A DNA stretch of 64,000 bases from Adineta vaga (taxonomy: Eukaryota; Animalia; Rotifera): positions 11,780,001 to 11,844,000 of the forward strand of contig CP075494.1 of assembly GCA_021613535.1 (NCBI GenBank), given 5' to 3'. The notes under the pieces were generated by a model that was not told the origin of the DNA, did not search any database, and saw only the letters and a program-made list of their open reading frames with translations. This document shows positions 21,419 through 52,958 of this stretch, one piece after another. Position 1 is the stretch's first letter. Every line of letters starts with the position of its first letter. The position numbers and the translations under genes were made by a program.

Positions 21419-22154
21419 CGATTTCACCTGTTTGTAGAGAATGTAAATGCAAATGGCTTCAAAAATAATGCATAAGAATCTTCTTCACAAGTCTGTTTTC
21501 TGTGTTGTCAACTGTGTTTTTATTTTTACGTTTTTGTAAACCATCATTTTTTTCTCCGAAAGATTGAGTGATGGTAGATGAAGAACGACAAAGTTTAACA
21601 AAATGTTGTTTTAGTTAATAGTCATGAAAACACTTGACGAAAAGATTTATTTAGTCTACTTAAGAGAAGAGAAATGTTCTCAAATATTTTTCATTCTATT
21701 CATAGTTGTATTGCTGTGTATGATTGGAGAGATATACAAAGTATTGGCATCATATTTAAGATAAACTTCTTTTTAATTGCTTTTTTCGTATTTATTCTGG
21801 TATTTGAAAATTCCACATGATGAATACTCAGAAGAAGGGATTATTGTCTTTGAAAAAATTGACGCTACGAACAAACGAAGAAACACAACGAAATTTCGTG
21901 AAAAGTATCTTCATTATTCTTTAGATCGTCGTTGAATCTCATAGCTCGAAAGATACTTCAATAAATGCTCAAACAATATTCTCACGCTCAGGTATCTATC
22001 CTACCTTGATCATTTTTATGGAAAACATCATGGTAGTAAACATGTTGACACAGATTGAAAATACATATCTATTCTTTCTATAAATAAAGGTTTTACGGAA
22101 ACGATCAGCCTAGACAATAAGCAAATAAGTATTATCGTGCTGTATTTTTCTTTC

Positions 22155-24377
22155 TTAATATCTGTTGAAAAGTGTGTGATTTTGATTCGCCGCTTTTTTT
22201 CTATACAGTATAAGAGAGAATAAAGTGAGTATCAGAAAAATGTTACGAAAACATGACTGAAAGATTCTGACTATTTCACTAATATTGTTATAGATACCGA
22301 CCAATTTACGATGATTCAGAAGATCTGATTTTTGCCAAATGACTAAGGCTTTTTCGTACGATGCAGTTGCTTTCAGATAATCACGCATTTCACGATGCAC
22401 AGTACCACGAGCATAGTAAAATCCGGCTAAAGAAGGATGATTAGAAGGAAAAGATTGTTGTTGAATCAGGAGAGCTTTCTCATAACAAGAAAGCGCTTTT
22501 GCGAAATTGTTGAAGGACAGTGCCAAATCAGGATGATTTGGAGCAAGTGATTGTTGTCGAATAGAAAGTGCTTTTTCATGATATGAAAGTGCTTTTCGAT
22601 ACTCACCCATGTTGTGATATACTAAACCCATATTGTTGTACGATCCTGCCAAATTAGGATGGGTGGATGGACGTATTTGTTGCCAAATTGCAAGAGCTTT
22701 TTCATATGAAGACAGTGCATTTTGATAGTCACCCATATGTCGATATACCTCGCCAATATTGTTGTAGTAGGCAGCTCGATTAGAATGACTAGGAGAAAAT
22801 GATTGATGTTGAATTCCAAGAGCTTTTGTATGAGATAAAAGTGCGTTTGGATAATCACTCATAGCGTCATACGCATTACCAATGTTATTGTAAGATGCAG
22901 CCAAGATAGGGTCATTAGGAAGAAGATCTTTTTGAAATATGTTTAGTGATTTTTGATGAAAGTTTAGTGCTGCATGATACTCTTGCTGATTGTATTTAAT
23001 ACAACCGAGTTGATGATACATCCATGCCTTACTGCTCTCATTCGTTGTTTGATCAAGTAGAATATGACAAATCTTCTCTGCCTGGTCATTTTGATGCATT
23101 TCAGTTAGTAAAAAACACAATCTGGACCATCCTTCATTATGTGGAGAACTCTCTTCTCGAATATGATTTGTAATTGTATTCAGTTCTGCATCGCTATCAC
23201 TGGTCAATGATAGATTTATTTCGTGAATTCGATTACTTTCATCTACTAATGTGATATCATGAATACGAAAAACACTATGCATCGAAAAAAGAACTTCGTC
23301 TTCATCCGGAAAGTAACTAATACCATGAATAGAAGCAAATGGAATTGTGGACTGGTTTGGATTAACTTTCATAACAAACACAATTCCTACCAAATCTAGA
23401 TTGCTTGCATTACTCTCGGCATAAAGATACGAAATATGTCGATCTTTACTAGTAGACAAGAAACTGTTGAACGACAGCAATCCACCTTGGAATTTCATCA
23501 GTTCATCGAAATCTGCTTTTGGCAATCCTTGACCACGATAAACTGTGAAGATTTCAGACGTAAGACGGTCTTTATATTGTTCCTTGTGCAGTCTTTCGAT
23601 ATTTCGATGAAGATCATTGATGAAAAATCCCATTCGAACAATAATATCGCCATCCATGGTTCGTAATGCACGATTAAGCATAGAATACAGGAAGCCTTCC
23701 CAAGTATACCACCATATGGATGTTTCTTGATGATATTTGGATTCTAATAACTTGACTTTGTCTAGTTTTTGTTTATTGTCATCAAATGCATCACAACAAT
23801 AATCAATGAATTTTTGAATGTGTTGTTTTCCAAAATTGATGCTCAACAATATTTCTTTTAAGAGTTGAGTATACATAAATGTTGGATCTAATTGATTCAA
23901 TTTCTTACCAGGTGTCACGAAACTTATTGGTATAGAATTCTGTTCACATTGATGAGTTATTTTTTTGACAACTTCGCAGATTGACATCATATCTTTGAAA
24001 ACACCTTTGATCTTTGACCATTGTTGCACTAAACCTTCACGATGTTTTTTCTTGTCACAAAATATTAAAATAGAATCCAGTTGTGAAATATCATGAACAC
24101 ATGGAACAATATGTTGTTCGAGTGACTGAGAGATGATCAAGCATATTTTATTATCGTTTATACTTAGAATAAATTCGATGCATTCATCACTATCCGTGAA
24201 TACATTGATGTCGTTCATCATATCTTGAAATTGTACAGGTATGCTTTGATAATTTCTAAAATTGTTATTAACACAAGTGTCTAACCAAACAACAACAACA
24301 TTTAGTAGCTTGTCAATGGTAATACATCGACGGCTAGCTACTTCTGTACGAGTTATAGGAATTTGTTCGTTTGTCAT
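22155..24377 (-). CDS. ART-TPR protein 2: same architecture, with a degenerate/truncated TPR end
   Basis: VYRGQ, SFLSTS, EDEVLF. About 7 TPRs, one with a 10-aa deletion. The last repeat breaks off into non-homologous sequence and the family C-terminal helix is missing. Confidence 0.85.
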   Translation of the reverse strand: MTNEQIPITRTEVASRRCITIDKLLNVVVVWLDTCVNNNFRNYQSIPVQFQDMMNDINVFTDSDECIEFILSINDNKICLIISQSLEQHIVPCVHDISQLDSILIFCDKKKHREGLVQQWSKIKGVFKDMMSICEVVKKITHQCEQNSIPISFVTPGKKLNQLDPTFMYTQLLKEILLSINFGKQHIQKFIDYCCDAFDDNKQKLDKVKLLESKYHQETSIWWYTWEGFLYSMLNRALRTMDGDIIVRMGFFINDLHRNIERLHKEQYKDRLTSEIFTVYRGQGLPKADFDELMKFQGGLLSFNSFLSTSKDRHISYLYAESNASNLDLVGIVFVMKVNPNQSTIPFASIHGISYFPDEDEVLFSMHSVFRIHDITLVDESNRIHEINLSLTSDSDAELNTITNHIREESSPHNEGWSRLCFLLTEMHQNDQAEKICHILLDQTTNESSKAWMYHQLGCIKYNQQEYHAALNFHQKSLNIFQKDLLPNDPILAASYNNIGNAYDAMSDYPNALLSHTKALGIQHQSFSPSHSNRAAYYNNIGEVYRHMGDYQNALSSYEKALAIWQQIRPSTHPNLAGSYNNMGLVYHNMGEYRKALSYHEKALSIRQQSLAPNHPDLALSFNNFAKALSCYEKALLIQQQSFPSNHPSLAGFYYARGTVHREMRDYLKATASYEKALVIWQKSDLLNHRKLVGIYNNISEIVRIFQSCFRNIFLILTLFSLILYRKKAANQNHTLFNRY
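23266..23769 (-). repeat. 504-bp inverted repeat, copy A (partner 51290-51793)
   Basis: Base-by-base comparison shows 5 mismatches and no indels in 504 bp. Confidence 0.95.
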
Positions 24378-25398
24378 TGACTTTACTGACTTGTAGTTTA
24401 AAACGTGAATGTTATAGTTAGTTGTAGTCAATTTCAAGAAATGACTTATGAAATAGTAATACGAATCTATTCGTTTTTATAATATTCGCGTGTTAAAAAA
24501 GATAACGAGTCGTCTTTTACATTCTTTACTTTGGTCTTATCAAAAAGCTATAAAAGTTTGGATAGACTTTCCTTTTATAGTAGTCAACAAAGGACGAAAA
24601 ACTACCAAAGTCAATGAAAACGAATCCTTGTTTTTCTTAATGATGTAGGAAATGAAATGAATACTAGGCATCAATATCATCATTCATATTTTCTCATCTT
24701 TACATGATGAAGACCACAGCCTATAGATATGTAAATTCTTTTGATTAATTCTCTACTTTCTATTCGAAAGTTGTATATATTCAATGTTTAAAAGAACAAA
24801 TCACTTTTTTTTGAAATATTATATTCAGAACAATACACAAACCTTTTCCAATAGAAAAGTTTAAGTATTGAGCATCCAAACACACTCATTCAAAATGGCA
24901 TAAAATCAATAATTTAGACATTGAATCTCAATAGTTTTCATCAAGTCTGATGTTTGTTATGTAATCATTAAGAAATGTAAAATGAAATAAGCGAGTAAAT
25001 CACTTCCCAATTGGTGTGTCAAAATAAAAGTATGGCTTGTGTTGAAAAGTCTCGAAGTATGTATCAAAAAAACATTATTATTTTCTCGTTAATCAACCAC
25101 ATTGGACGACGAAATATTTACACTTCTTAATTCTGTATTCTATGAAAATAAAAAAGACAGGTAGATCGTTATCGTACAAGAGGTGTCTGAGAGAGCGTAC
25201 CTTGAAAACTTGATTTCTCTTGTGAGACTATATAACCAAGAAAGAAAAATGAGAATAATATATGTGTTCACGATTTTTACTCAGAATATATATCCTTAGA
25301 ATATGACCAGACAATAATCGTACTTCGTTGTAAAAAATATACCAATTTAAGCACAAACTGAAGATATTATTCTCTTTTCACTTTATTGAACTATATAG

Positions 25399-25722
25399 AC
25401 GTCAATTGTGGATACTATGGAAGAAGCGGACGAAGACAAACAAGTAAATCCGTCCCCTAGTTGGACTCCCGTATACCAACGTTTGAAGAATATAAATAAA
25501 TATGCAGAAAGATTCTTTTCAACTCCATTTCGTATATTAGAAACTGTTCTTGATAACATTCACAGTTTTGTTACTCAACATGCAGTATCTTATTCATTTT
25601 GTATGTGTATAACAATAACTGCAACCGTTTCAGCTACAGCTATTGCTGTTGGAGTCGGTACTGGTGTAGGAATTGGATGCAGTAATACAAATGGAAATAG
25701 TTCAAATTCAACAAGTAGTTAA
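25399..25722 (+). CDS. Small membrane protein with a C-terminal glycine-zipper helix (main exon; possible short upstream exons from ~25142)
   Basis: ITITATVSATAIAVGVGTGVGIGC followed by N-x-S/T sequons. Acceptor AG at 25397-25398; AATAAA downstream. Confidence 0.65.
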   Translation, partial: TSIVDTMEEADEDKQVNPSPSWTPVYQRLKNINKYAERFFSTPFRILETVLDNIHSFVTQHAVSYSFCMCITITATVSATAIAVGVGTGVGIGCSNTNGNSSNSTSS

Positions 25723-25814
25723 TGAACTCTGAATTTGTTTGATTTCTCTATCTTTGTTAAAGATCGATATAAAAATAAAAAACTGAATCGTTTATAACAA
25801 TGTAAAATTTTTAA

Positions 25815-26289
25815 TTAAAAAATATAATAAACTTGATAGCTCGTTCCGTTTGTTGTGTTACTCACATCGGCATCTTTCGCACAAGTTAATCCAACACCAA
25901 GTCCGACACCTAATCCAATACCGACAGAACAAGATATACTCGCCACTGAAACGGCAATCATTCCTGGACCTACTATACTATTAACAGAGAGTAATGTTGG
26001 AATGATATTTGTTATTCCAAGTTTTCCTAATATATATAGCGGAAAAGAGACAATGATTTCAAAAATTAAACCCAACATTTTATATATTTCTCCAGTGAAC
26101 TGCCATAAAGTTGGTGGTTTCGATTCTTTCCGTTGTTTTCTACTTGTCGAACGGTAATTCATCAACATCGCTAGTGCAAATAACTGAATAAATATAATAT
26201 TGTTAACATCAAATCTCTTTCTCACTTGACTTTATCTTGTAAATATAAACCTTGAGTTGAAGATTCCCACCGAAATTTATGTTACGCAT
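25815..26289 (-). CDS. Small membrane protein with a C-terminal glycine-zipper helix, probable paralog of the convergent neighbour
   Basis: IAVSVASISCSVGIGLGVGLGVGLTC followed by NTT/NGT sequons. An upstream exon (26289-26226) splices in frame; start uncertain. Confidence 0.65.
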
Positions 26290-26569
26290 CGTTTCATCAA
26301 GGTAGTAACAGGATGCTAATAAGAAGAGCCTTCTTCAAGGTAAATAATTCTGATTGCATCGATAAAATTAATCAATCATATTTCAATAAACATATACCCT
26401 CTCTTGAGTTTTTTGTCAACTAGACAAAAAATGAGCACCGTACTTTTATGAATATCATATTAAATGCTATGTACAAGGTCACTCTTTCTAATTAAATCTA
26501 CAATTTATTTTCATATCTATAAGATACATTTCGCTTAAAGTATTAAATGTACAGAAATATATAATGAAT

Positions 26570-27450
26570 TTATTTTCGATCTAAACGACGTGGTGTAGCA
26601 TAAGCAGGTGATGATTGTTGTCCATATCCCGATGATTTCACATTTTTTAAAAGAGTTCTTGTTGTAGTAACAGATTGACTTCGTGATGATGGTGGTGTAT
26701 TCAAATTTTTCTTAATGTAAGTTGATTGCATCTGTTTTCTATTACCAATAGGTGTTGAAATGCTAGCATTCAAAGATGCTTGACGAGTAAGTCGATTTTC
26801 AGATAAAACCTATGTAGAAAAGAGAATGTTAGTAACACAGAAAAATATTGAATTATATCTTTTACAGATTTAAGACTTCGAATTTCATTACGACATTCTG
26901 CTACTTCTTGCATCAATGCATTCATTTTATCTAGAAAACATAAATAATGTGACTTTCTCTTCAAATAAAGACAGCTAACTTTGTTTTGATGGATCAATTT
27001 CTTTAACATAAATTTGCCCACGATTTTCATCCATTATTTCAATAGCATCAGCAACAGAACTACCGGATTCAACAACGTAAAATTCCTATAGAGAAAAGCA
27101 AATTCATAAAATATCGTGATATTTTCTTCTTTTACTTTGCATGGTAATGATGCTGGTAATTGGTCATGATGAATTCTAAATAAAGATGCAATTTTATAAT
27201 AAAAAAATAATCTATGATAGCAAACAATTTCGAATATTTTTCATCATTATGATATTGAAATAATGACAGAGGTCCGTATGTGTATTGACCATCAGCAACG
27301 GCATAAACACGTTTATAATTTGAATCTGGATTATAACGATTTTCTATTATAAAAATAAAAAGAGATATTTCATGAAGAAAATGTAAAGATTAATTTACCT
27401 AAAATTGCAAATGGAAAATCAAATGGAATAATGATATCAGTGGAATTCAT
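26570..27450 (-). CDS. Uncharacterised ~200-aa multi-exon protein with a short coiled coil and basic Ser/Thr-rich tail
   Basis: Six short exons join as MNSTDIIIPFDFPFAIL/ENRYNPD.../IHHDQLPASLPCK/EFYVVESG.../NKMNALMQEVAECRNEIRSLKS/VLSENR...NVKSSGYGQ. One donor site is weak. Confidence 0.6.
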
Positions 27451-27902
27451 GATGATCAACAGTGTACTTTCAAAATTGAGAACAGAAGAACGGAACAATA
27501 ATTGAGAAAACAGGAAGGAACAAAGACTCTCATCGTGACAAAGACCCGGCCAAAGTTTTATTTTTCAATTTAATTTAAAACTTTTTTTCCAGTTTTTCTT
27601 AAGTCATTTTCATTATAAATCATTTGAAAAGTAGAAAATCAATCTATATGTATGAAATATGTCATTTATATAGATGGCACTAATATCAATTTTATAGTAT
27701 AAATCATGTTTCATTAAATAAAAGAAAGAAAAGAAAATTCATGATACATGTAAGCAAAAAAAGTATATATACACATATATACGCGCATAGAGAAATTATG
27801 CAAGTTTTGATTCCAGATTAGTGTTCGCCGTTATTTGCATAGCAAAAATTAAATGTGTGTATATATATGTCAGTATGGAATGTATTATGTTAGATGTCTT
27901 GA

Positions 27903-30900
27903 CTATGGTTCTTCTTCAATAACTTTCAATTCTTTACGACGTTTTTCCTCATCTAAAAATACAGAAACAATATTTGCCAAATCAGTTTACTTCAGTACAA
28001 ACCTGCTTCTCGTATCCATCGTTCACGATTTTCTTTCAAATATTCTGCCCATGGTCGTCGAAAAATCGCTGATCGACCTATAGGTGTGGTCATTGAAGAT
28101 GGTTTTCTTTCACGTCTGTACAAAAGAACATATATCTCTGAAAATATGTCTATTTTTTCCGTGTTTATTACCCATTTTCTAATTGGTCATCTTGATGTGT
28201 AGTTGATTCATTCAATGATCTTGGTGATGCTGGTGGTGAAGGTGATGAACTGACACTTTTAGCCGGTATCGATGGTGATGGAAGTTCAGAATCTGGTACA
28301 GATAATGATTTCAAAATTTTCTCAAGCATATCACCCATAACAACGAATGATGGTTCGACGATATACTGAATGAAACCTAAGAAAACAAGCAAATATAAAT
28401 AATAAAATATTTTTCTCTCGATTGATTAATCTACCGATTTGAGATTCAGCAACAAGTGTATTATCTCGATCACATAATGGTGAACATGGTAAACCAAGTT
28501 CTTTTTCTTTTTCACCTTGTTTAAAATATTCTTCCATTAATGATTCTGTCCAAGAATAATGAATACTCCAAGGTTTTCCTGGATGACTAATATCCGCACT
28601 ATGTAGTACCAATGCCAATGCTTTTGATTTTTCAATACTAGAACTTTTTTGGGTTAAAACATAAAAATAACTCGAGGAGATAAATAACTTACTTTTCTGG
28701 CATACTTAAGAGACTTTTCATCGTTTTTAATTGAGCAAAATGTGAACTCATATCTGTAGCGAGAACCATTTCAATAACCAAATGACGAAAATTCCTTTCA
28801 AAAATAAATAAGTTAATAAAAAACATTCTTCAATTCGTTTTTATTACTTACTTATATTCATCCGTTGAAAACTCCGATACAATATTATAATCGTCGATAC
28901 GCATCAAACGAAATGCAGCACTTACATGGTGATTTTCCAGAACAGCGCGATCATTGTAAATTAATGCCACATCAGACCTAATTTCAACGAAGAAACGACA
29001 TTTAACTACTATTTTTAGAAATATATGTCATAACAACATAGAATTCATGACTCATTAATTCTCCTTGTAGTTTATTTTCACACTGAATTAAAAGCTATTT
29101 TAATCTACAGAAAAACTATCAATTTATTTTCCTTGTCGACTTATTACCTCGATTGAATATGAAAATTATTTGATGTTCCAGTATGTTCAAAATCATGTAC
29201 AATCGCTGCAATGAACATGGCAAATAATTCATGATCATTAAGCCAATTCTATACATAGGATCAAAAAGACAAAATTGATTTCAATCGTAAATGAAGATAT
29301 TTGACAAAGCGTCTAATTCCAACTATGCTAGGCAGAAGCAAAAAAAAAGAACTAAGAAATCGATCGCTATGTTTTCACAAAAAATAACTACGAAGCAATT
29401 TAAACAATGAAACTCCATTAACCTCTACCATGAGACCAGAATTGTAGATAATTTGATATGTTGTTTGCAGTACATCAGCAGCATGAATTAAATTATGATA
29501 TGGATTACGATATTTACTATAACCACTTTCCATTTGTTCAAGAAAATTTTGTAATGCAGTGATAGAAATCTAATTTTGAGAAAGACAAACAATGATCATT
29601 GTTATTAATAGAAAGATAAGTTTTTACATGAAGTTTATTTGGTAAATTATATCGTTGCATAAGTTCAAAACCCACATAACGTAAACATTGTCCACTGGTA
29701 AATTCATTGACGGAAAATACATCAAATGTCCATTCATTAATTGTCTACATGAGAAAAAAAGATTCGTTCTATCATCATAATCTTCAATATTTCTACAAAA
29801 ACAACATAAAAAGCACGTCGATTATTGATTGCATTCATGCAGAGTAGAAAGGGAACTATCCAACTTACTTGTCGACAAATATCATTCGAAAGAACCAAAA
29901 CATTCCGTCGAAAAAGTCTAAAGGATGTTCTCAATTTTTTCTTTGTCATTTGCAATGAATGATGTCAAGCGTATAGTTTTATCAAGATGCGTGATTATAG
30001 AATATGCAACAAAAGTGAATTTCAGAGAAAGAAGTAAGAGACACAACTCAGATGAATAAAGTACCTTAAATTTTATATCGATAGATAAACGTCTTAAATA
30101 CCTAGAAAAACATACACATAGAAAAACAACAAATAGATGCGAAACATTCAAATGATAAACATAAATTTCTCGAATCAAATTACATGCTTCTCATAACAAT
30201 TATACCTTAAATTTCGTATGAAGACACCAATCTTTTACAACTCTGACAAAGATGGAAAGTAATGATGTAGTCAGAAAGATGTCTAATTCTCAATCCTATA
30301 CAATTTTTCTTTGTCTCTTTTTTTTTCTCATTACGAACCTGTCGACCATAATTCCTGCTCGTATAGCTTGTGCAACACTTTTGAATTTCGGTTTGTCGGA
30401 TGGTCGTCGTTTAATTGTAGACATCGATCGAGTAAATGTCATTGCTAACCAATCTCGTACTTCATTGGGTACTGAATCTGGTTCAATTTCTGATAATGCT
30501 CCATCATCTTCTTCCATTAATCTTCTACAATACAAAGAAAACCAAGATGAACATGAATATTTTCATCGGTAGATAGTTCTTTCTTCTCTTCAATCGACAC
30601 ACTACCATCATTGTCAAAATGATAATAGTGGATGTCGTAAGTGCTACTTCTTTTTTTTTCAATAGAAAAGGTCTAAATCCACATATACTAGAATGATTGA
30701 TTACAAATGCAGATTTCTTTCATGAAAATAAATGAGAAAAGAAAAAAATGAGACACAGAGAGATAATAAAGTAGCTTATTTAAATCTACTAGATCTGACT
30801 ATTTATTACCTAGTTTCATCTTGATGAACAGCTTCGAGAATACTGGCAATATAATCTAAATTACGAAGAAGATCGTCACGAGAGACACCAATATTACAAT

Positions 30901-31893
30901 GGAGGGCAGCAATGATGGTTCGTAATCTGAAAAATTGACATATTCAAAACATGGTTTTTGCAAAAAAAGTATCTTTTACCTTTCACTACCGATTTGTAAT
31001 GCATCGAATGAGTCAGCTGGTGGTAAATATTTTCCATCACCCAAAACGGCGACATCATGTTCAATAATATCAAATGGTGTTTTATTAAGATCATCTTCAT
31101 CAATATGTCTATCATAAAGATGGTTTTCACCAATTGATTTTGCTTTATTGGAGAAGATCGGTGAAAGATGGTCTGCAGATAACATTAAGTTAAATTGATT
31201 TATTTTCACAAGAAAAAAAAACGAGAGAAGACGATGTTTTTCTCTTTGTAACGAAGACTAATGTAAGTTGAAGAGGAATCGTAAATGGATTGACATCGAA
31301 ATAACTAATAGATCTCAAGAGTAGGAAGTAACTGACAAAATAGAATAGTTATATTTGCATTCTATCAATCTAGGAAACAGGAAAAATGTCGTATTTTTCT
31401 TTGTTGATATACTTGTCTGACATCAGATAATATTCGAACTATTGTCATCAACATTGAAGAATGACACTCTATTGTTGACAGACAAATATCAAAGTCTTTT
31501 CGACAACTAAACGAGACTGTTTCTTGTCTTGGAAAAGAACGAACCTGTATCGTGATGTATAACTGCTGATGTAGATGCTAGCTTTGGTGATCTTGTTGAA
31601 TGATGATGATGATTATGATTTCGTTTGCTAGTTGCAGATCCGGATACTTAAAACAAAAAGAGAACAGAGATATTTCGTATTTGTATCAATACTACTGAAC
31701 AATATAAACAGATTTTGTAATAAAATAGAAAAATGCTATGATTTTGAATTGATTCCTACTTATGTCATGTCTCGAACAATATTCGTAAAACTAATTAATC
31801 ACCTTTGATTGTTTTTGATGCGGAATTTGTTAATGAAGTACCAATGATGATAAGGGATGAACCTGAAGTTAATCGAATTTTTCGACCGGGCAT
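27903..31893 (-). CDS. PDE1: Ca2+/calmodulin-dependent 3',5'-cyclic nucleotide phosphodiesterase 1
   Basis: Exons encode NLDYIASILEAVHQDETRRL, VPNEVRDWLAMTFTR, KPKFKSVAQAIRAGIMVDR (PDE1 regulatory region), then NPYHNLIHAADV, HDFEHTGTSN, LENHH, VLATDM, HSADISHP and SQIGFI (class I PDE catalytic domain). Confidence 0.95.
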
Positions 31894-32386
31894 CTTGTTA
31901 ATTAAGTAGGAAGTATAAACATGTATAAAAAAATAGATGTGTTGCTGTCTTCAAAAAGAAAAATGAAATTTGTCAGTCAGTTTGCTTTGAAATAGATGTG
32001 TATATGAAAAAGAAGAAGAGAAACTTACATTGCAATGACGATCTACACTCGACGAATAGATAGGAGAGTGAGAAGACGAGTTAGTAACACTACATCGTCA
32101 AAACATTATCCTTTTTCCGTTGCACGACGACTGTGTGATGACGTTTTTCAAGAAGATTTACCTATAGAAATAATGATGATCATGTCAAAGAAATTACTGA
32201 AAGGAGAAAAAGAAAACGGAAGAATAAGAAAAGATTATTTTGTGTTCATCAACATCCTTTTTTTGTAGCAAGAACATAGAAATAATGACGACGACGACAT
32301 ACTACCTGTGCTCATCGGCAGCTTCTACTTCGTCGTGTTCTTTTTTTTCTTCGTTTTCATTCTCTTTTGAAAATTATCATAATTAT

Positions 32387-32420
32387 AGAAGAAGAAGAAG
32401 AAGAAGAAGAAGAAGAAGAA
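32387..32420 (+). repeat. (GAA)n microsatellite
   Basis: About 11 tandem gaa units. Confidence 0.9.
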
Positions 32421-32991
32421 AAGATATAATATATATATGAGTAACACGACATCCTTCGTCGTTAATACACAAATATCTATAGTGACCGTCCAAGTACACA
32501 AAAAAAGTAGAGGATTTCTCATTTAACTTTTTTTTTCTTTTTTTCTCGTCATAGAAATCAAACAAATTTCTATCATTAGACTAATTTTAAAGACGTATTA
32601 TCTTCAAAAGAAGATTATCTGTGCAATCGCGCAGAAAATCTTGCTTTTAGCAAGCTTTTTAACCATATCTCTACAATGTATTTCTATGATTTCCTGGTCA
32701 TGACGAAAAAATTTGGCTCTGTTATTGGACCAAGTGTTGTCCTGGAAAAGACTCTTGAACTTTAGATTATTTTTAGAAAGAGTCAATAGAAATGATTAAG
32801 AATAAATCCAGAGATGACCTTGAAGCAGGCGAGAAGACATGCAAAATTGAAACGATCATGCCGACCTGTGGATTGAAATATCAGATGATAATGACATTGA
32901 AGTAAAAAAAAACAAGATATTTTCAATTCGTCTCATATTTATTTGAATTTTTTGTTCTTTATACAAATTTCAAAAAAATAAGAACCAGCAA

Positions 32992-33005
32992 ACACACACG
33001 CGCAC

Positions 33006-33035
<30 letters not shown>
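32992..33035 (+). repeat. (CA)n microsatellite with CG interruptions
   Basis: Direct reading. Confidence 0.9.
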
Positions 33036-33036
<1 letters not shown>

Positions 33037-33257
33037 GAAAAGCATGTCGTATAACAACAATAATAATAGCAAAAAAAAACAAGCCTACATAAAAACGATG
33101 TAGAATACATCGATTTTCACAATTACTAAAGTAGAACAGCACCAACAGCAACAAAGACGCACGCATCGGTGATTTTTTCTCTTTTTGTTTTGGTTTTTCG
33201 CATAGAATACGATGAAAATGGACGGTATAAAAGAAAAATGTGCAAGCCAATAGAAGA

Positions 33258-42200: not shown

Positions 42201-45200
42201 TCAATGTTTGTACCTGAGTGATCAATAATTTCGGAATAATGTGAATTGAGTTCATCGACATCTTCATCTGTACTTGCGTAGGATATTTGCTTTGGTTTCG
42301 ATATCATTACATGATTTGTTAACAAAGGACTGTTTTGTTGGGATTGAATCACAGTATGTGATATATAGTTAATATCTGAATGAACTACCGAATGATTTAA
42401 TTCATGAACATCATCTGGCTTAGAATCACTCTTCGTCACATTATTCTCTGATACTAAGAAAAAAAGAGAAGAAAGAAAATGATCTCTTATTCAACATTGT
42501 ATTCATTATAAGATATAATACCTTGATGAATTTGATTTTGTTCATTTGTAATACATTTTTGATGAAGTATGGGTGGTGCTGAAAGATTTTTTTCATCACT
42601 GGATGAGCCACTATCCGTATTACTATCTGATCCATATTGTGTATGATATCTTCTTAATAATTGTTGATATTTATGTAGACGATCATCACTTTGTGATTTG
42701 ACAATAGAATATCGAAGATGTTTTCCATTCCCTTCAATATTCCATTCAATATTCTTTGTATTATTCAATAATGATGGTTGAGAACGTTTTGTAGTTGTGA
42801 TAGAAATAATATGTCCATAGAAATTTGTTGTAGTATTATTTTGTTGCACTTCTGATGGCGAAGAGACAATATGAAATGCTGATCCTGTCGAATTAAGACA
42901 TGACGATGTGAGAATTGACTCTGGTGATGGATCAAAATTCTGCCAACAATCGATCTGACCACATTGTAAGGTGATATTTTTGGATGCAATTGGTATCGAT
43001 GAATTCTTTTGATTGATTATTGGTTGAACTTGTTCAATTGAATAACGTGGATAAGTGTTTTTGTCATCTTCATCCTTATTCAATGATGTACTTTTCCAAA
43101 CACACGTGATCGTTTTGGTTAAACCAAATGAATTAGTTGGATGTATTTTGTTTGTTAATTGAATGAGATAGAGTGATGGTGCTGGAGTTGAATGATTTGA
43201 TTGATCAACTGTAGATACATATGTCGAATGTGGACGAAGTGGACGATCTTGTTTTGGTTCTGATAGGGAATCATCGGAGAGAGAAGAGAGAACTTGAGTT
43301 GGTGATGAGACTCGATATGAACGAGATTTTCTACGTAGAGGAACTGCTGAAGTCGATGATGAAGACGAGGACGACGAAGTAGAATTGGTGACAGATATGT
43401 CATGAGACGATGATCCAGATTTTGAAGGACGACCTGGACAAGAAAAGAAATAACAAGTCAAGATATATGTATGATGCAAAGAAGATATTGAAATGCATTT
43501 TCTAGGTAACTGTCATCATCTGAAGTGTTTTTACAAAACACACACACACAGATTTCAATTGTTTAATTGTCAAATCGAATCCGTCATCAGTATGATTCTA
43601 TTATTGATTGAATTATAATCGAAAACACTTGAAACATAGTTTCTATCATCTTTATTTTGATGCAGTGACTGACAGTCGATGCAAACATAAATAATAAGGA
43701 TTTGATACATTGAATATTCAATGGCGTTCATTTCTTTAAGTACGAAAAAGTATCATAAGAACTAATGTTGACTTCAGGATATAACTGACTTCTATCTATC
43801 TTCATCCTACTATCTAAATACAACAACAACAACAACCTTTAACAAATAAATTATATCTCTTTCGGTTGTTTTGATATGTATATCTGATAATAAAGCATTG
43901 ACTTACCACGAAGAACAAGTTTTGTTTTATTGAAAAATGTACCAATTGAAGGAAACATAGATAAATATCTTAAATCGATATTATTCGAATGAAATCTTTC
44001 GATATACTTAAATCAAATTAGAACAATAAAAATATTTCGATCGATTAAGTCGTATCGTACAAAATATAATACATAATGGTAATAGTATTCATTTATTGTC
44101 GACACCGCCTCCTTAGTAATGACATTAAGAGAAGAAAAAAAGAGAGAAAACGACTTGATTATTGTTCATCGTCTATTTCTTTTTATTCTCTCATTCTCTT
44201 TCGTTGGTCATCAAGAGACAGAGACTTATGTCCACAAACGTGTACTTATGATTACTAATTATAAATAGTAGTCTTTTTTTTATCCATCTCTCTCTCTCTC
44301 TCTCCCTTCATGATTAACTATAATGAAAAGAAAAGAAAAGAAAAGAAGTCAATCTCCTTAGATTTGTTAGATTGACTTTGGTCATGAATAATTCTAATTC
44401 TCTAATGAAAAATTCTACATGTATATTATTGATCACCTGGATCAATCTATGCATGCAAAATAACCAATGATCTGCAAATAATAATGGTTTTTACCTTCTG
44501 TCATCCTTTCTATTGTTCTACTTTGATCAAATTTCACTACCGTGTGGACGACAAACAAAATCTGTCTGACCGAAAACAACTAAACATTGATAGAGTTCTC
44601 AATTTTCTCATTTTACAATGATTTTTTCATATGTAAATATGTTGATGATGAAATAAGTACAACAAAAAGAAAAAGAAAAGAAAATATCCGATCAACTTGC
44701 ATATGAAATATATGTATATTTCTTTCTTTCTTCAACGTAATCATAAATGAATTTCTGCCGTAGTGATTTGTTTGATAATAATCGTTAAAATATTCAAAGA
44801 TTATTCTATCGAAAGAATCTGTATATCGATTGTAACATTCATTGTCGTTCTGTAATTATTCATCTACTACCGTCTACGTATTGATTATATTGTTAAACAA
44901 TAGGTAAAAGAATTCCTATTGAACATTTCGGTAGAATACCTTCTTTTTTTTTATACATGATAATACTGTCGATAGACATGATCAAAATTTCAATCTACTT
45001 ATACTAATATCAATGATAGAATTAGTATGATTTGGATTTCTCTTAATGAAAGAAAAAAAAGTAATTTGAGAAGAAATTTTTCTTTGGTTTTTTTTTTGTT
45101 ATTGATGAAGTATATTTGTATATGTCATTACTAATCCATACTTCACTAACATCGCAAATAGAAGAATCATTTACTTATAAACAAAACAAGCTATTCTATA

Positions 45201-47198
45201 CCTTCTCTATGTCGATAACGTCGTTGTCGTTTGTCCGTTGTTGTTGTTGCTGCTGCTGCTGGTGATGATGATGACGAATTATTATGTCTATAACGTCGTT
45301 TTTTCTTCATTCCCATGAGATTATTTAATTGATTGTTTTCATTATCAGACATTGTCAACGGTATTTGACATGTATCATCATTTAAACTAGAAAAAACAAA
45401 ACATTAAATTAAATCAAATGATTAAAAAGAAAAAGTAGCTTCTTCTTGTTCTTCTTCTTTCTATTCCTTCTCTTTGACATCTGTTCGATTATTAATAACA
45501 AATGTTTTTTCCATATCAATTTAGAAGAAAGTTTAAATTACCTGTTGATATGAACATATTCAAACGAAAAAGAAGAATAAGTAAAAAAAAGAATCTAGGA
45601 GAATAAAGTGAAAATTCTTTTTCACTTTAACAACAGAGCAGCATTTTTTTCAAGTGTTCAAAGTAATGTTAACCTTGTGGAATACGAATAGTAACTACTT
45701 CTATACACATATGTATGTGAAGAGGAAAAAAATGGATTTAGCTTATTTACTAATAGTTATTAGAATGTATTAATATAAACTGAATGAGATTGAACAAAAA
45801 GTTTTCGCTTCTCTTTGCTTTTGCATAACTAACGTGTGGATTTTTTTCTCTCTCTCTCTCTCTCTCCCTCTCTTTTTCTGTGTATCAACGAAGAAGAAGA
45901 AGAAGAAGCCGTGGAAGAGAAGCGTGCATATAAAATTATTTATTTTAAAGTTCTCTTCATTTCACAGACAACTTGTGAATTGAAATACAAGATCGTAAGT
46001 TTATCTTTGCTTCGATTTCTCTCTAATCGAAGAGAAAATCCTTGAAGTAATACACCTTTTCTATAATCAATGTTAGCAAAAAAAACGTTTATATTGTGAC
46101 AAGTGAGGTTGTTTGTTCTCAATTGAGACTCTCGTCTTCTCCTTCCTTTGAATAATTGTATCGATAAAATTTTCCAGAAGTTCTTTTTTGTTTATTTTAA
46201 AAATATAAATAAAAAAAAACTGAAAGATGTTTCGAACGTTGAGTCTGTCGATAATTATCTTTGAATATAAAGAAATCAAAATACACGCATTCATTGTTAT
46301 GATTTTCAACATTCTCAGACTGAACTTTAACGTGTTATTACTACGCGTAAGTGTGAAGATTTCAAGAAAAGCAAGGTTATAGACAGAGAAAAAGTATGCC
46401 TTTTGAATTGATTTTATGATGGAATTAACGGAGAGTTGTCTATCATAAAAATAGGTGTCTATTGTATGAGATTCAATTCTTCTTTTTTTTCTAAAATTTT
46501 AAACGAACGTGGTGATATGAAATCCTTGTGCTGTTTTTGATTATAAATGAAACCTTTGTGTATTCATTCAACGAGTTTCTATGTTCTCATCAAATATCGA
46601 AATAGAAAATTTTTGTTATCGATTACCTATCTATTTCATATTGAGTATCGATGGTCACTGCTGGTGATGATGATGATGAATTGTGCTTTAAAATTAATCG
46701 TGGAATTTTACTTTTCTGATTTAATAAATGAGTTTTTGTTATTGATGATGATGAAGATGAATATTCACTTGTCGATGTTGAAATTCTCACAGGTATTTTT
46801 GATTTGAAACGTTTTGATTTATTTGAACTTTCAGGAGATTTGATTGTATTTATTAATAAAATTGATGAATCATGTGAAATAGCACGTCGTTTATTTATCA
46901 TTGATTGTTTAATTCTTGGTTCGACTTGTTCATGATGATGATGATGACGAAAATTTGAACATGTTGGGTCATGTTTATGTTGGGGCATGGAATAGGATGA
47001 TGAATTAGGTAAATCTTTTAATGATTCACATTTACATGTTGCGCAACGTGGGCACGGAGGAAGAATAATGCGCTCGTAACCTTGTAATAATGGATCACGC
47101 CAATCTCGTAATGATTCAGCAAAAACTAAGTGTTCATTGGAAGGCGTGGCACGAATATTAAATAATCCATGTTCAGGATTCGTTCCTGATTCAGCCAT
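33258..47198 (-). CDS. Giant (~2,450 aa) low-complexity protein with a C-terminal coiled coil; about 12 coding exons; function unknown
   Basis: ORF blocks at ~47198-46627, 45386-45202, 43433-42522, 42453-41428, 39904-39723, 39257-38878, 38250-38088, 37688-36496, 36421-35513, 35452-34492, 34419-33753 and 33450-33258 connect with phase-compatible GT-AG sites. It could be more than one transcription unit. Confidence 0.65.
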
Positions 47199-50100
47199 GG
47201 AATTGAAATTCAATTGATCTTAATCTGTTTAATACTCGCCGTTCGACACCCTGAAATAGGTTTATGTATAAAGAAGACGATGCATTGTTAAAATTTAAAA
47301 AGGTGTGCGTATATATGTGTGAATGTGTAGAGAAAGAACAAAATCAAAAGCAATTGATTTCATTCCAAAAGATGAAAGAGAACATAAAATACGTTCAATT
47401 GTTATCTATCTTTCGTACTTATGTCTTCAGGGTTGAATTGAACTTTTGCCAGTCATATTCTATCGTTAGTAGCGTAGTTATTATAACAGTTATTCTTTCT
47501 TTTTCTTTCTCTCGCTCTTTTCTACTGTCCTTTATATATGTATAGATCCGATCTTTCGACAGGTGTAGCACGCACAATATAACATAATACAGATCTCATG
47601 TTCATCTATCCTCTTTAAGATGAAAAGAAAAAAATTTCTTGTCTAATATTCTATGAGAAGAGAAGTGAATATATAAACAGATCTAGCATGATTTCAAAGA
47701 CCAATCTCTTAATGAATAGGAAAAGAAAGACAGAATAAACTCGTTGATACGCTCAATATTCACGCATATGATGAGTTACTTTATTTTGTCTTGAAATTAG
47801 ACACAATAGAGAAATGATGAAATTAAAATACAAATTAATCAAAAAGCATGTCTTTCTTATTAGTCTAGCCTACCGATTCACATCCGTCGTGGGCTGACTA
47901 TTTAATGTTTCTAGAATAAACGATTTCCGTGAAAATGTCTACTAAGATGCGATCGAGCCAATTGAACTCAATCGATCTATCATCTCAGAGACATATACAT
48001 GATCAAAAAAGAAAATGAAACAATAGAAGAAGTAGGAAAAAAACGACAATGTTGATGGTATTGTTAGTTTTTTTCTCTCTTCTCCTTCATCAGTTACTAA
48101 TGATCGAATATTCTCTTGAGAATCAACAATGACATTATTAGGTTTCTCTCACCTTCTTCTTTCTTTCTTTCTTTTTTTGTTTGATTCAATTGCAAATCAA
48201 TAAAATCGAAAATTTGTAGCAAATAGATTCTGATTTAATTTCATTTCTCACTTGAAAAAAGTTGGAGAAAAGAATGAATCATAACAAAATTCTTCCTTTC
48301 TTCTTCATATACTTCGATGCTTACGCGTCAAGTGCTCGAAGAAAAACAATAAGTGGCACTGATACGGTAAACTTCAATAAAGACCGATGGACAATGGAAA
48401 AGACAACAAGAGAAGAAAAAAAAAAGAGGACAATCGATATAATTCTTACGTCATGTACTCGAGCATATTTTTCTTTGCATCTATTACAAAAGATGATTTA
48501 TTAAACTATATATATATATCATTGTTTATATTATTACTCAACAATGCGCGATTCAGATTTTAATCAAAGAGAAAAAACACTGGAATAAAAAGTGCGAAAA
48601 AAAAGAATCAGAAACAGAGTGTCAAAATATAAACAGAACAAATGTATGGTAAAGAATTTACTAATTAATCAGCAGCGAGTATTCTTTTCCTCCTTTTTTT
48701 TCTTTCATGCCTAAGACGTATACACCGTCGATAGAAAAGGATGAATGAGCAGCAATAGTTATAATCACTAGCAGAAAAAGAGGAGAAGAAAAAAAAACGT
48801 GTGTTATGTGAAAAAGATTTTTCTTCTTTTTTTCTTTTCAAACAATAGTAGTACCACCTGATCAATATTAGTTTGATGATGTGAGCAGTGCACATAGTGA
48901 ACATATTGTATGGCTTGATAGATCTAACATGTCATAATGAAAAGAATTATGTTTTTTTTAAAGTGAAGTGAAGTTAGTTCCGTACATGCATATGCATATA
49001 TGTATATTAATCATATGAAAGTCAGAAGTACATTTTTCATATCGATGTTAGAATTCAAGTACTTTACTATCGTTTTCATTCTAATAGTGATAAAGATACC
49101 TTGTACTTAATCATATTAGTTGAATATGACATATACCTCGATGAATATATTTGACAAAGGTCAGGAATGATTGTGCATATATAAGATTATTATTATTATT
49201 ATTATTACGAAGCTTAGTCTTAGAAAAAGGTGTCACTTGGTGTGTCGATAATCGAGTATATACATCTTTGTACATGTATATGTAACATTTATTATTACGC
49301 TTTTCTTTTAATACATGTATATATTTGTATGTCAACGGATGAAAATGTAAATCGAGGAGAAAAGAAGTAAACTACATTACAGCTTTGTTGTAATCAAAGT
49401 TAGGTTTCATTATCGAAGTATAACCTTGATAGGAAAAATTATAAATGGATAAACGATATTTTTTTTTGATCAGATCATGTCTGGATATGAATGGTAAATA
49501 GTCCATTTACTCAGCTGATTTATGTGATTGTAGGAGAAGGTCTTACGGTAAAAAGGAAATCATAGTACGCATTAAAATTCGAGCGAGTTCCGGATTTAAT
49601 GATTTATCTGTGACAGTAATATGTTTTCATTTATAATTTGATGTCGAATTGTCCCCGAGTACTAGGTCATAACCGGAACGGAACTGGCTCGACGAAGCAC
49701 ATAATAGTATCAATTCAATGTCTTTTCTTTCGAAACTTTTCATTATACAGGAATTATTCAATATGTTGACCGCTGTATAGTTTTATTGATTGATGGCAAT
49801 ACGTCTTTTTTTTGTAACGATGAAGTTATATTTATTGATACAAAATCAATAATAATACAATAAGTAGACTTATCAAATGACATCTGTCATACATCTAGAT
49901 AACCTATTCAATGTTATGAGTAATATTTACGTCAATTCAAGGAAGTATTCGTCGCTTTTTACGTAACAAATTGATTTCATATTTTGTGAAATTTTACGAC
50001 TTATGTAGAGTGAATAAAACTTTTGAACTTTGAGAAAGAACAGTTCTTTCTAATCATTGATGGTTATAATTTCAACGTTTGTTATGATATCGTATATTTG

Positions 50101-50687
50101 AATAGAACAAGCTGCTTCTGTTTAATTTTATTATTATCTATCATAATTTACGAACCCCGCATGTATCTAAACTGCTGCGAGCATTAGAAAATATATATAT
50201 ATTAAAATATACGAAAACTCTTATTTCAATACAATCATGTTGCAAGTTTGTCTAATTCTTAATGTATTTAACTAAATCAATACTTTAACTTCTGTTGGCT
50301 TTCGATCATTCAATAATACAAAACAACTAAGAGACAGACAGAGTCCAATTTTAATGAAACTTAGACCGTTAAATAGACAAAATACATTTTTTGTGGATTA
50401 TTTCGATAAATATGGGCAAAAATGACATTTATTTGGATTCTACCCACTTAAAATGTTGATTATGAATGCTTGTATTGATCTGTCTTGTTTTTACGGCTAA
50501 GCAATTTAACAATAAAAATCAACGAGAAAAGGCATCTAGAAAAGTAATAATTACTTATAAAAGAAATTATGTTTACTTATTTTTCTTTTAGTGAGTCATG
50601 CATGCGTTGTAACTTAAATGAATCGCATTCATATAAGTCGTCAGTAAAGTCAGTTATAACCAAAAAAAACAAGGTAGTGTCAGAAGC

Positions 50688-52958
50688 ATGCAACAAGTAA
50701 GAGGAACACCAGGAGTACTAAATAGACGTCGTCATATTGACATTGAGAAGACACAAAATATGATTCTAGTATGGTTGGACAGCTACATTGATAATAATAA
50801 TGAGGAATGTCAAAATGAAATTGCAGAACTTCAATGTGTTGTTAATGATATCAATACATTTACAGATAATGATGAATGTTTTGAATTTATTCTAAACATT
50901 AATAATAATAAAGTATGTATGATCATTTCTGGATCACTTGGACGGCTTGTTATGCCTTGCATACACGATATTCCTCAACTGGATTCTATCTTAGTCTTTT
51001 GTGCTAACAAAAAACATCACGAACAGTGGGCCAATGAATGGTTCAAGATCAAAGGCGTCTACTCAGATATAATATCAATTTGTGAAGCTCTTAAACAAGT
51101 ATCGCGTCAATGCGAACAGAATGCCGTACCGATAAGTTTGGCAGCATCTGGTAAGAAACTGAATCAACTCGATCCATCCTTTATGTACACTCAACTTCTA
51201 AAAGAAACACTGCTAGATATCACCTTCAAAAAGCAACATATTTAAGAATTTATCGATTATTGTCGCAATATATTTTCTGATAATGAACGAAAACTAGACA
51301 AAGTCAAGTTATTAGAATCCAAATATCATCAAGAAACATCCATATGGTGGTATACTTGGGAAGGCTTCCTGTATTCTATGCTTAATCGTGCATTACGAAC
51401 CATGGATGGCGATATTATTGTTCGAATGGGATTTTTCATCAATGATCTTCATCGAAATATCGAAAGACTGCACAAGGAACAATATAAAGACCGTCTTTCG
51501 TCTGAAATCTTCACAGTTTATCGTGGTCAAGGATTGCCAAAAGCAGATTTCGATGAACTAATGAAATTCCAAGGTGGATTGCTGTCGTTCAACAGTTTCT
51601 TGTCTACTAGTAAAGATCGACATATTTCGTATCTTTATGCCGAGAGTAGTGCAAGCAACCTAGATTTGGTAGGAATTGTGTTTGTTATGAAAGTTAATCC
51701 AAACCAGTCCACAATTCCATTTGCTTCTATTCATGGTATTAGTTACTTTCCGGATGAAGATGAAGTTCTTTTTTCGATGCATAGTGTTTTTCGCATCAAT
51801 GAAATCAAATCAATAAATCCTAACAATCAACTGTTTGAAGTGAACTTGTCACTTACTAGCGATAATGACGAAGATTTAGTTGCACTCACTGATCAAATTC
51901 GAAAACACAATTTTTCGAACTTACAAGGGTGGAAAAAATTGGGACTTTTACTGTTTGACATGAGCCAATCGAACAAAGCTGAGGAGGTTTTCAAAATGTT
52001 ACTTCATCAAACAGCGGAGGAATCTGATAAAGCAGTGTCTTATAATGCGTTTGGAAGAATCAAATATGCTCAGGGCAAATATCAGGAGGCATTAATATAC
52101 TACGAAAAGAGTCTTTCCATCTACGAAAAAGATCTTTCTCTAGATCACTCTAATGTAGCTTTTATGTACCAAAACATCGGTCTGGCATATGATGGTATGG
52201 GTGATTATCCAAAAGCACTCTCATACTACGAGAGAGCCCTCCCACTTCTACAGAAAATTTATCTCCATGATCATTCTGATTTGGCTGGCCTTTACAACAA
52301 TATTGGCTTAGTGTATTGCAACATGAATTGCTACCCAAAAGCACTGTTATCTCACGAGAAAGCTCTCACAATTTGGCAAAAAGTACTTCCTTCCAATCAT
52401 CCTGATATAGCTTTGTCCTATAATAATATTGGTATGGTGCATCAGTGCTTGGATGACTATGTGAAAGCACTTTCATTTCATGGAAAAGCTCTTACAATTC
52501 GACAACAGTCACTTCCACCTAATCATTCAGATTTAGGTACATCATATGACAACATTGGTATGGTGTATCAAAATATGAATGAATGCCTAAAAGCATTAAC
52601 TTATCATGAGAAAGGTCTGAAAATCAGACAAAAAGCACTTCCTTCAAACCATCCTGAATTGGCTAAATCCTACAGTAATATTGGTTTAATATATCGGTTC
52701 ATGAAAGACTATTCAAAAGCGCTTTCATTGCATGAAAAAGCTTTAGCCATTCGACAACAAACACTCCCATCAACTCATCTTGATTTGGCTTTCTCCTACT
52801 ATAGCATTGGTGTAATTTACACAGACTTGAAAAACTATTCAGAGGCCTGTTCATATTTTGAGTATGCAATACGGGTTGTCCAACAATCATCATTACCAAA
52901 TCATCAATGGTTGCAAGAATTTTTTCGAAATCTCGAATCTACGAGAAAAAAATTGTAA
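50688..52958 (+). pseudogene. ART-TPR protein 3 with one in-frame TAA (51243-51245); ART domain and ~8 TPRs otherwise intact
   Basis: ORFs 50688-51245 and 51378-52958 are in the same frame. KQHI*EFIDYC aligns to KQHIQKFIDYC of paralog 2 (CAA>TAA). Confidence 0.85.
51290..51793 (+). repeat. 504-bp inverted repeat, copy B (partner 23266-23769)
   Basis: 499/504 identical to the reverse complement of 23266-23769. Confidence 0.95.

Follow-up and report, generated by a model that had tools for sequence, protein, structure and literature searches.

Probable recent gene conversion between two inverted ADP-ribosyltransferase–TPR paralogues of the rotifer Adineta vaga

Conversion between duplicated genes

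Interlocus gene conversion is well known between linked paralogues, such as the human CYP21A2/CYP21A1P, TLR1/TLR6, globin and opsin genes and the members of plant resistance-gene clusters. The two genes described here, A and B of chromosome 5 of Adineta vaga, resemble these cases in that nearby duplicates share a short (hundreds of bp), sharp-edged and in-frame stretch of near-identity that includes synonymous sites, in that one partner may be a pseudogene, and in that the inverted orientation allows exchange without deletion. They differ from most documented converting pairs in being far more diverged (dS >1, about 30% of the nucleotides, and no identical run above 15 nt in the flanks). Pseudogene-templated diversification, as in the chicken immunoglobulin V genes, the trypanosome VSG genes and Neisseria pilE/pilS, draws recurrently on many donors and is aimed at the variable part of the gene. 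The A-B pair has in common with it a patchwise copying between a possibly silent and an expressed copy; unlike those systems, it presents a single event with one partner, and in the conserved catalytic part.

In A. vaga itself, meiotic crossovers and gene conversion have been shown, and allelic conversion tracts of ~100 bp to a few kb are documented together with NAHR (PMC13564844, PMC8494291). These allelic conversions and losses of heterozygosity (PMC8494291; PMC13564844) concern the same organism, have similar tract sizes and presumably use the same break-repair or meiotic machinery, but they take place between homologous chromosomes that are ~1-2% diverged, whereas A and B are paralogues on one chromosome. 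An earlier note on this DNA had seen in the A-B tract a way to shuffle modules without meiotic sex. Since crossovers and conversion do occur in A. vaga, that premise is dated. Within the literature library searched, nothing specific was found on interlocus gene conversion in bdelloids.

The paralogues and their ART domain

The window, that is, the whole 64,000-nt stretch of DNA that was analysed, carries three paralogues (Table 1). The tracts shared by A and B are inverted and 27.5 kb apart. Over 1822 nt, A and B are 76% identical, and no introns cross the tract in these genes. The ORFs of the segment between the 5' ends of A and B gave no Pfam match.

Table 1. Coordinates of the features in the window
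Feature	Position	Strand	Description	Basis
Gene A	22155..24437	-	intact 760-codon ORF	ORF list and translation, Pfam, AF2 model
Tract in A	23266..23769	-	conversion tract, codons K204 to second base of R371	499/504 identical to 51290-51793
Catalytic R-S-ExE motifs in A tract	R281 23535-23537; S308-T-S310 23448-23456; E359-D-E361 23295-23303	-		
Gene B	50688..52958	+	collinear 757-codon frame, architecture as gene A, one in-frame stop inside	translation; Pfam on its two pieces
Tract in B	51290..51793	+	conversion tract	alignment; Logan contigs break at both ends
In-frame TAA in gene B	51243..51245	+	45 nt upstream of tract	translation; independent 2013 contig covering 50996-51335
Gene C	19505..21427	-	tandem neighbour of A, same architecture	55-82% identity to tract
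Segment between 5' ends of head-to-head A and B	24438..50687	.	26 kb	geometry

Gene A probably starts at the ATG at 24377, giving a product of 740 aa with an N-terminal alpha/beta domain, an ADP-ribosyltransferase (ART) domain and a TPR array whose C-terminal part is irregular (AF2 model, mean pLDDT 78). Pfam recognizes PF03496 (36.2 bits for a cut-off of 23.4), PF01129 (23.3 bits for a cut-off of 22.3) and TPR_12/TPR_10 in this protein, and B and C score similarly. Both A and B carry R281, S308-T309-S310 and E359-D-E361, and these columns show little or no variation in an alignment of 40 family sequences. By profile, A, B and C belong among the R-S-ExE ADP-ribosyltransferases, A and B also by these motifs, with a predicted NAD-dependent activity. 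The same Pfam matches and the same R, S-T-S and E-x-E motifs characterize the Adineta and Rotaria entries annotated as 'ADP ribosyltransferase domain-containing protein' (PF03496 ADPrib_exo_Tox, PF01129 ART, plus TPR). The family as a whole, with its putatively receiver-like N-domain, R-S-ExE ART domain and TPR array, forms a very large and varied group among bdelloids (3725 matches at E<=1e-30), and relatives are counted in thousands in bdelloid proteomes; a literature search on ART-TPR proteins in rotifers found nothing specific to them.

No Pfam family matched the N-terminal alpha/beta domain, which was modelled by AF2 over residues 1-198 with a pLDDT of 72.5. When this model was compared with the PDB by Foldseek, the best matches were weak ones to REC domains and to an N-terminal portion of Arg/Lys decarboxylase chains, which we take to be their wing domain (E 0.006-0.07, TM 0.4-0.47). 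The ART region, used as a query in a PDB sequence search, matched no solved structure.

The shared tract and its edges

Within the tract, A and B differ at five positions (B 51498, 51560, 51649, 51659 and 51761, corresponding to A 23561, 23499, 23410, 23400 and 23298), two of which change an amino acid (T/S and N/S), and the first 208 nt and the last 32 nt are perfectly identical. Identity in 60-nt sliding windows is 97-100% inside the tract, as against 55-83% outside. The drop is abrupt: in A, mismatches at 23770 and 23265 set the edges, and the 30-240 nt just beyond them are 67-74% identical on the left side, as against 58-60% on the right side. Outside the tract, the longest identical run is 15 nt. 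The mismatch rate of 26-42% in the flanks makes the occurrence of five or fewer mismatches in 504 nt a matter of P = 1e-60 to 1e-78 (binomial), and a GENECONV-like permutation test gave z=20.5 for this tract. The copies are collinear, with a sharp, in-frame edge on either side, and the junctions show neither indels nor added bases. Across the 100.8-Mb genome, the tract has matches of at least 98% at these two places only, the next best being 72-73%. Gene C, judged by its identity to the tract, took no part in the exchange.

Near-identity of a catalytic region might be ascribed to constraint. The NG86 estimate of dS between A and B is 0.030 in the tract, 1.16 in the N flank and 1.30 in the post-tract flank, and dN is 0.005 in the tract and 0.28 and 0.45 in the flanks. 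Synonymous sites have been homogenized as well, so that purifying selection does not account for the identity. The tree of the tract makes A and B sisters (100/100) on branches of 0 and 0.012. In the ML tree of the N-domain they sit on separate long branches (0.56 and 0.26) of one clade with an internal order that is not resolved, and a quick, poorly resolved search on the post-tract region does not group them together. In these alignments the tract tree conflicts with the flank trees. The description in the earlier note, a tract running from KLDKVK to MHSVFR that takes in the WWYT helix and the three catalytic motifs, five differences of which two alter the protein, a steep fall of identity on either side and an adjacent paralogue that stood apart, agrees with the translations, codon coordinates and alignments, and its reading of the tract as a recent ectopic conversion between inverted paralogues is well supported by the homogenized dS, the in-frame edges, the conflicting trees and the junctions found in independent reads.

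The reads bear on another explanation, namely that assembly collapse or short-read polishing pasted the ART region of one copy onto the other. Such an error would be favoured by the use of a collapsed haploid reference and by the repeat-rich nature of the family. The read evidence consists of short-read contigs from three studies with independent runs (2013, 2015 and 2022); the linkage of the N flank to the TPR flank of each copy was taken from the published assembly. A 3226-nt contig, recovered from the runs of 2015 and of 2022 alike, begins 30 nt inside the tract and extends into the right flank of B with zero differences, and a 2013 contig crosses the left tract edge of B and the stop codon, so that junction-spanning contigs of all three years agree with the assembly. 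The Logan contigs of the tract end precisely at 51290 and at 51793, and the loose contig ends at both tract edges are the flanks of copy A. Read depth roughly doubles in the tract relative to the flanks (64 vs 34; 392-507 vs 177; 369 vs 172-197), which also suggests that the tract is homozygous. Within the tract the reads vary at no sites other than the five A/B differences, which the assembly has kept, and the runs contain no contig leading from the B flanks into another ART sequence. Runs X2 and X3 are without a contig on the left flank of B, a gap which proves nothing. The finding of the B junctions in independent contigs, together with the doubled depth, makes an assembly or polishing artefact unlikely, to the point of being hardly credible.

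Origin and meaning of the tract

The data are best accounted for by a single recent non-crossover interlocus (ectopic) gene conversion of about 504 bp of ART coding sequence between anciently diverged, head-to-head paralogues 27.5 kb apart, and we regard this as very probable. A DNA break in one paralogue would have been repaired with the nearby inverted paralogue as a homeologous template, perhaps by synthesis-dependent strand annealing or a similar pathway, and some 504 bp of the ART region of one paralogue would thereby have been copied into the other. A crossover inside the 504-bp inverted tracts would instead invert the 26-kb segment that separates the genes. An identity of 15 nt falls far short of what homologous recombination is generally taken to require, and with no longer identical run in the flanks the exact recombination pathway is uncertain.

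This short homology is what could favour another templated mechanism, either template switching at microhomologies of the MMBIR/FoSTeS type, for which the proximity and inverted arrangement of the copies would also be suitable, or repair from the cDNA of the expressed copy. Indeed, contigs with the flanks of copy A were found in a probable RNA run, so that copy A appears to be transcribed, and a cDNA template would leave no mark since no introns cross the tract. However, the clean junctions contain nothing that would set such an event apart from ordinary conversion, and any microhomology at them is unreadable now that the original sequence of the recipient is gone. We consider these mechanisms highly improbable.

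Which copy was the donor is suggested by none of the comparisons with any force: the ratios of branch lengths fit either copy, and deviations at conserved sites are equally frequent in A and B. The genome holds no relative of either flank above 76%, and the N flanks of A and B (71.6% identical) are marginally each other's best match. Best matches taken segment by segment give a weak hint that the flank and the tract of A share relatives (L003/L004). A word search of protein databases with the N-domain of A (E<=1e-62) returned only P0121, the NCBI model of the same locus, and metagenome contigs, scanned with a degenerate pattern for the WWYTWEGFLYSM motif that is specific to A/B, gave no match.

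The mutual best match in the N flank might also be taken to mean that the tract is merely the latest round in an island of concerted evolution, where the ART cores of A and B have been homogenized repeatedly since the duplication, perhaps through selection for a shared enzyme. This would explain how recombination could start in spite of flanks that are ~30% diverged. It would be expected to leave shoulders of intermediate divergence, yet identity is already down to 58-74% in the first 30 nt outside the edges, and the perfect identity of the first 208 and last 32 nt means that the latest event itself set both edges. Selection for a working enzyme common to both copies is also hard to reconcile with the nonsense codon of B, and we hold this history to be improbable.

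That codon stands where A has CAA and C encodes Gln. TAA is the terminal codon of all three genes, and the internal TAA of B is therefore a genuine stop codon; an alternative code that reads TAA as Gln was rejected on the same ground, and ORF statistics under it were no better. An intron skipping the stop was likewise rejected, A and B being collinear there, without extra sequence. The probable RNA run that contains copy A held no B-specific sequence.

The stop codon weighs on a further claim of the earlier note, that the catalytic module alone was exchanged, which would homogenize or swap the enzyme while the sensor repeats stay different. Such an exchange could serve to diversify a sensor-effector family. 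All catalytic motifs do lie in the tract, the N-domain and the TPRs are untouched, and bdelloids have a very large and variable complement of the family. Nevertheless, the tract (residues 204-370) ends inside the predicted ART beta core, within the strand 368-377, and leaves out the last predicted strand (384-391), so that it does not represent the whole domain. In addition, B has its stop upstream of the tract and lacks B-specific RNA contigs, and since the exchanged part is the conserved one, little diversity would be gained.

A family-wide scan points the same way. It sampled ~54 members of at least 97 candidates, about half. The A-B tract was the only one of its kind, both in a sliding-window scan of 54 members (1472 alignments of at least 800 nt) and in a permutation scan of 1126 pairs. 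The other significant mosaic fragments measure 700-1200 nt and cover the N-domain and half of the ART domain, to which they are not confined; the clustering of tracts on the ART domain, which the earlier note had proposed to look for across the genome, did not emerge from either scan. Two members with high permutation scores, L022 and L056, have 5' parts that are not homologous to A and were left out. A sole tract among some 50 members, in an animal with published meiotic crossovers (PMC13564844, PMC8494291), does not fit a device for shuffling modules without sex, and a functional swap of this sort has in our view very little chance of being correct. Judging from one nonsense codon and a single probable RNA run, the tract is most probably a neutral side product of repair and not a domain-shuffling device.

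A bolder, and rather doubtful, extension is that break repair in bdelloids routinely accepts templates ~30% diverged. Sharp-edged patches of 0.3-0.6 kb between ancient paralogues would then occur genome-wide at a rate unusual for animals, the ART tract being one instance, and the C-to-T nonsense change of B, 45 nt from the edge, would be what mutagenic single-strand resection left behind, marking B as the recipient.

We see in the tract a further case of a familiar process, gene conversion of the ordinary kind between duplicates, and one event, with a stop codon in one copy, provides no evidence of adaptive module shuffling. It is a textbook-quality, read-supported case in an animal noted for its asexuality and its unusual DNA repair. 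It indicates that exchange in A. vaga extends beyond homologous chromosomes, and that a gene can have its catalytic core overwritten by a paralogue from which it differs by 30-40% in the other domains. Should patches between very old paralogues prove to be common, they would bear on the strictness of the homology requirement of bdelloid recombination and on how large defence-like families stay partly homogenized.

Extent of the shared tract and its relation to the ART domain

Genes A and B, two head-to-head members of the ADP-ribosyltransferase (ART)-TPR family, align over 1822 nt with only 76% overall identity in a self-comparison of the window. Within the tract, 499 of 504 bases are identical. 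The five differences lie at 51498, 51560, 51649, 51659 and 51761 in B coordinates; two are nonsynonymous (Thr/Ser and Asn/Ser), matching the counts in the earlier note. Indeed, the abrupt drop in identity that it described on both sides is borne out (97-100% in 60-nt windows within the tract, 55-83% beyond), and gene C, the tandem neighbour of A, does lack the tract, to which it is 55-82% identical. The first 30, 60, 120 and 240 nt beyond the edges are 67-74% identical on the left side and 58-60% on the right side, so that neither edge has a shoulder of intermediate similarity. If the tract had the mismatch rate of its flanks, at most 5 mismatches among 504 sites would occur with a probability of 1e-60 to 1e-78. 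Nei-Gojobori dS is 0.030 in the tract versus 1.16 upstream and 1.30 downstream (dN 0.005, 0.28 and 0.45, respectively), so that constraint at the protein level cannot account for the identity.

Features of the window discussed in the text
Feature	Position	Strand	Remarks
Gene A	22155-24437	-	intact ORF
Gene B	50688-52958	+	collinear with A; single in-frame TAA
In-frame TAA of B	51243-51245	+	CAA in A, Gln in C
Gene C	19505-21427	-	tandem neighbour of A
Tract in A	23266-23769	-	A residues 204-370
Tract in B	51290-51793	+	
ORF chains between A and B	33749-39251; 41345-43479	-	ORFs of 130-415 aa
Two very long ORFs	3823-10907	-	1658 and 677 aa
Direct repeat within 3823-10907	7860-7975; 8550-8665		116 nt, 78% identity

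Pfam places ADPrib_exo_Tox (PF03496) and ART (PF01129) above cut-offs, followed by TPR_12/TPR_10 arrays, and leaves the N-terminal 185 to roughly 200 residues (185 in B) without a family. With a mean pLDDT of 78, the AlphaFold model of A from a 40-sequence alignment predicts an alpha/beta domain (residues 27-154), linker helices (165-197), ART helices (202-268), an ART beta core (277-391) that carries R281, S308-T-S310 and E359-D-E361, and TPR helices from 416. Folded alone (pLDDT 72.5), the N-domain gave only weak receiver-like PDB matches (E 0.006-0.07). On the predicted structure, the left edge of the tract falls two residues inside the first ART helix (202-217) and its right edge midway along strand 368-377, so that the remainder of this strand and the beta-core strand 384-391 are not covered. 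Thus the earlier description of an exchange confined to the catalytic module stands as regards the motifs, all of which lie inside, but not as regards the boundaries: the tract differs from the modelled structural domain, and the ART fold of the recipient copy would now be chimeric.

The NCBI model I4U23_025716 (database protein P0121, 921 aa; 19505-24437 and beyond) mixes pieces of A, of C and of unrelated neighbouring exons, and lacks all TPRs and the greater part of the ART domain of A; two neighbouring single-exon genes seem to have been mis-annotated here. At 22155-22700, one repeat in the TPR array of A is truncated (…SFNNFAKALS…) and the C-terminal tail is aberrant and hydrophobic; residues 707-740 have a pLDDT below 50 in the model. 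Near 22220-22290, a small deletion may have occurred or a short intron may have gone unrecognised.

Independent reads and the age of the event

Short-read contigs (Logan) from four studies of the same organism were compared with the B region, 50200-53200. The 2015 and 2022 runs each yield a 3226-nt contig that begins within the tract (at 51764, 30 nt from its right edge) and continues into the right flank of B without differences; a 2013 contig starts at the same position. Another 2013 contig (50996-51335) spans the stop codon of B and the left edge, including 46 nt of the tract; the left flank of B has no contig in the runs of 2015 and 2022, a gap that proves nothing. The contigs of the tract itself end exactly at 51290 and 51793, the contig ends left unmatched at either edge belong to the flanks of A, and the depth of the tract is about twice that of its flanks (64 versus 34; 392-507 versus 177; 369 versus 172-197). 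Within the tract, no position varies apart from the five A/B differences. Two loci that share the tract in the organism would produce such a pattern, whereas polishing that had pasted one copy's tract onto the other would not be expected to; both the junction contigs and the doubled depth argue against an assembly or polishing artefact of the kind the earlier note had considered. These being short-read contigs, the linkage of the two flanks across the tract comes from the published assembly.

Flank contigs of the 2013 run show 1.4-2.3% divergence from the assembly and presumably represent the other haplotype. At 1%, the divergence of A and B in the tract is no larger than this allelic divergence, meaning that the event is evolutionarily recent; the tract occurs in all samples from 2013 to 2024. 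At 23775, in the left flank of A and 6 nt beyond the tract, the 2013 contig that carries this flank has C where the assembly has T (…GACAACA… versus …GACAATA…), apparently allelic variation right up to the tract edge. In X13 and X15, sequencing runs labelled as two other organisms, 5-10% of the 31-letter words of 50200-53200 are present, so part of this region is near-identical in other species, a similarity that might help to date the event.

Origin and singularity of the exchange

A collinear, in-frame, indel-free patch between linked inverted repeats 27.5 kb apart is the product expected of non-crossover gene conversion. Such an interlocus event between A and B probably made the tract, and the recent ectopic conversion proposed earlier gains support from this structure and from the low divergence. 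Crossovers, NAHR and allelic conversion tracts (~100 bp to a few kb) have been described in A. vaga (PMC13564844, PMC8494291). What is unusual here is how far the partners have diverged: their longest identical run beyond the tract is 15 nt. Strand invasion and re-annealing that tolerate ~30% mismatch are one possibility, and a template-switching or cDNA-templated route is another. An older, nested homogenised island could also have supplied the homology; against this, identity is perfect over the first 208 nt and the last 32 nt of the tract and shoulders are missing, which indicates that the latest event set both edges. Since A and B are head to head, a crossover in the tracts would instead invert the intervening 26-kb segment, and would also exchange the TPR arrays between both N-domains. 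The ORFs in this interval, which have no Pfam match at E<=1e-4, probably belong to multi-exon rotifer genes.

The genes have their closest relatives in Adineta steineri, A. ricciae and Rotaria, and belong to a very large family (3725 database proteins at E<=1e-30) with at least 97 candidate loci in A. vaga. When the 100.8-Mb genome (six pieces) was searched with the tract, A and B alone matched at 98% or more, the next match being 72-73%; no N flank found anything above 73%, and no post-tract/TPR flank anything above 76%. With flanks lacking close genomic relatives, A and B are old, isolated family lineages, and these searches suggest that one donated the tract to the other, with no other recent exchange in either gene.

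Among 54 sampled loci, 200-nt sliding windows over 1472 long pairwise alignments single out A-B as the sole pair with a ~100% tract on a ~70% background. A GENECONV-like maximal-segment test with column permutation, applied to the N-domain, ART domain and linker of 50 members, likewise ranks A-B first once two 5'-truncated members that gave false signals are removed (z=20.5; A nt 609-1112; 4 mismatches in 414 polymorphic sites). The remaining significant fragments measure 700-1200 nt, exceed their background similarity only moderately, and cover the N-domain and part of the ART domain, several stopping near nt 929. None of these is restricted to the ART domain in these 50 members, and the suggested clustering of tracts on this domain is thus not seen in the sample. 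Loci L027-L029, compared with L030, L035, L048 and L049, reach 85-88% at polymorphic sites over A-gene nt ~69-929 versus 77-80% overall; this mosaic extends from the N-domain halfway through the ART domain, where it breaks near the S-T-S motif; an earlier recombination or a change of evolutionary rate may lie behind it. Homology to A starts only at nt 423 in L022 (G000:C1:7349340-7352832) and at nt 238 in L056 (G000:C6:3853000-3860000), probably 5'-truncated or rearranged copies.

Condition of the two genes and place among known conversions

The internal TAA of B lies 45 nt upstream of the tract. Reading it as a sense codon was ruled out: A, B and C all terminate at TAA and ORF statistics do not improve with TAA as sense, hence it is a genuine stop codon. 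The next in-frame ATG of B is at 51378, and the product from it would lack the N-domain and the first ART helices. The frame of B is otherwise intact, and deviations from family-conserved residues are equally frequent in A and B; therefore its inactivation, if real, is recent. The nonsense change is C-to-T relative to A; to ascribe it, from this one case, to repair-associated mutagenesis at the nearby conversion edge is pure speculation. In X14, a run guessed to be RNA, three low-depth contigs join the tract to A's own flanks with A letters at the diagnostic sites, and B-specific flanks are uncovered except for three 23-24-nt TPR matches from another family member's contig. This single probable RNA run suggests that A is expressed and B silent.

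The tract is a case of interlocus gene conversion, a well-known process, and as such a real but ordinary event. Published bdelloid work treats conversion between homologous copies, whereas A and B are paralogs, and our literature search found no paper that mentions 'bdelloid' together with 'interlocus gene conversion'. In the present case the process has acted on an ART-TPR pair of a bdelloid and is backed by independent reads, which raises the genome-wide question of how often, and by which pathway, short patches are copied between such diverged paralogs in A. vaga.
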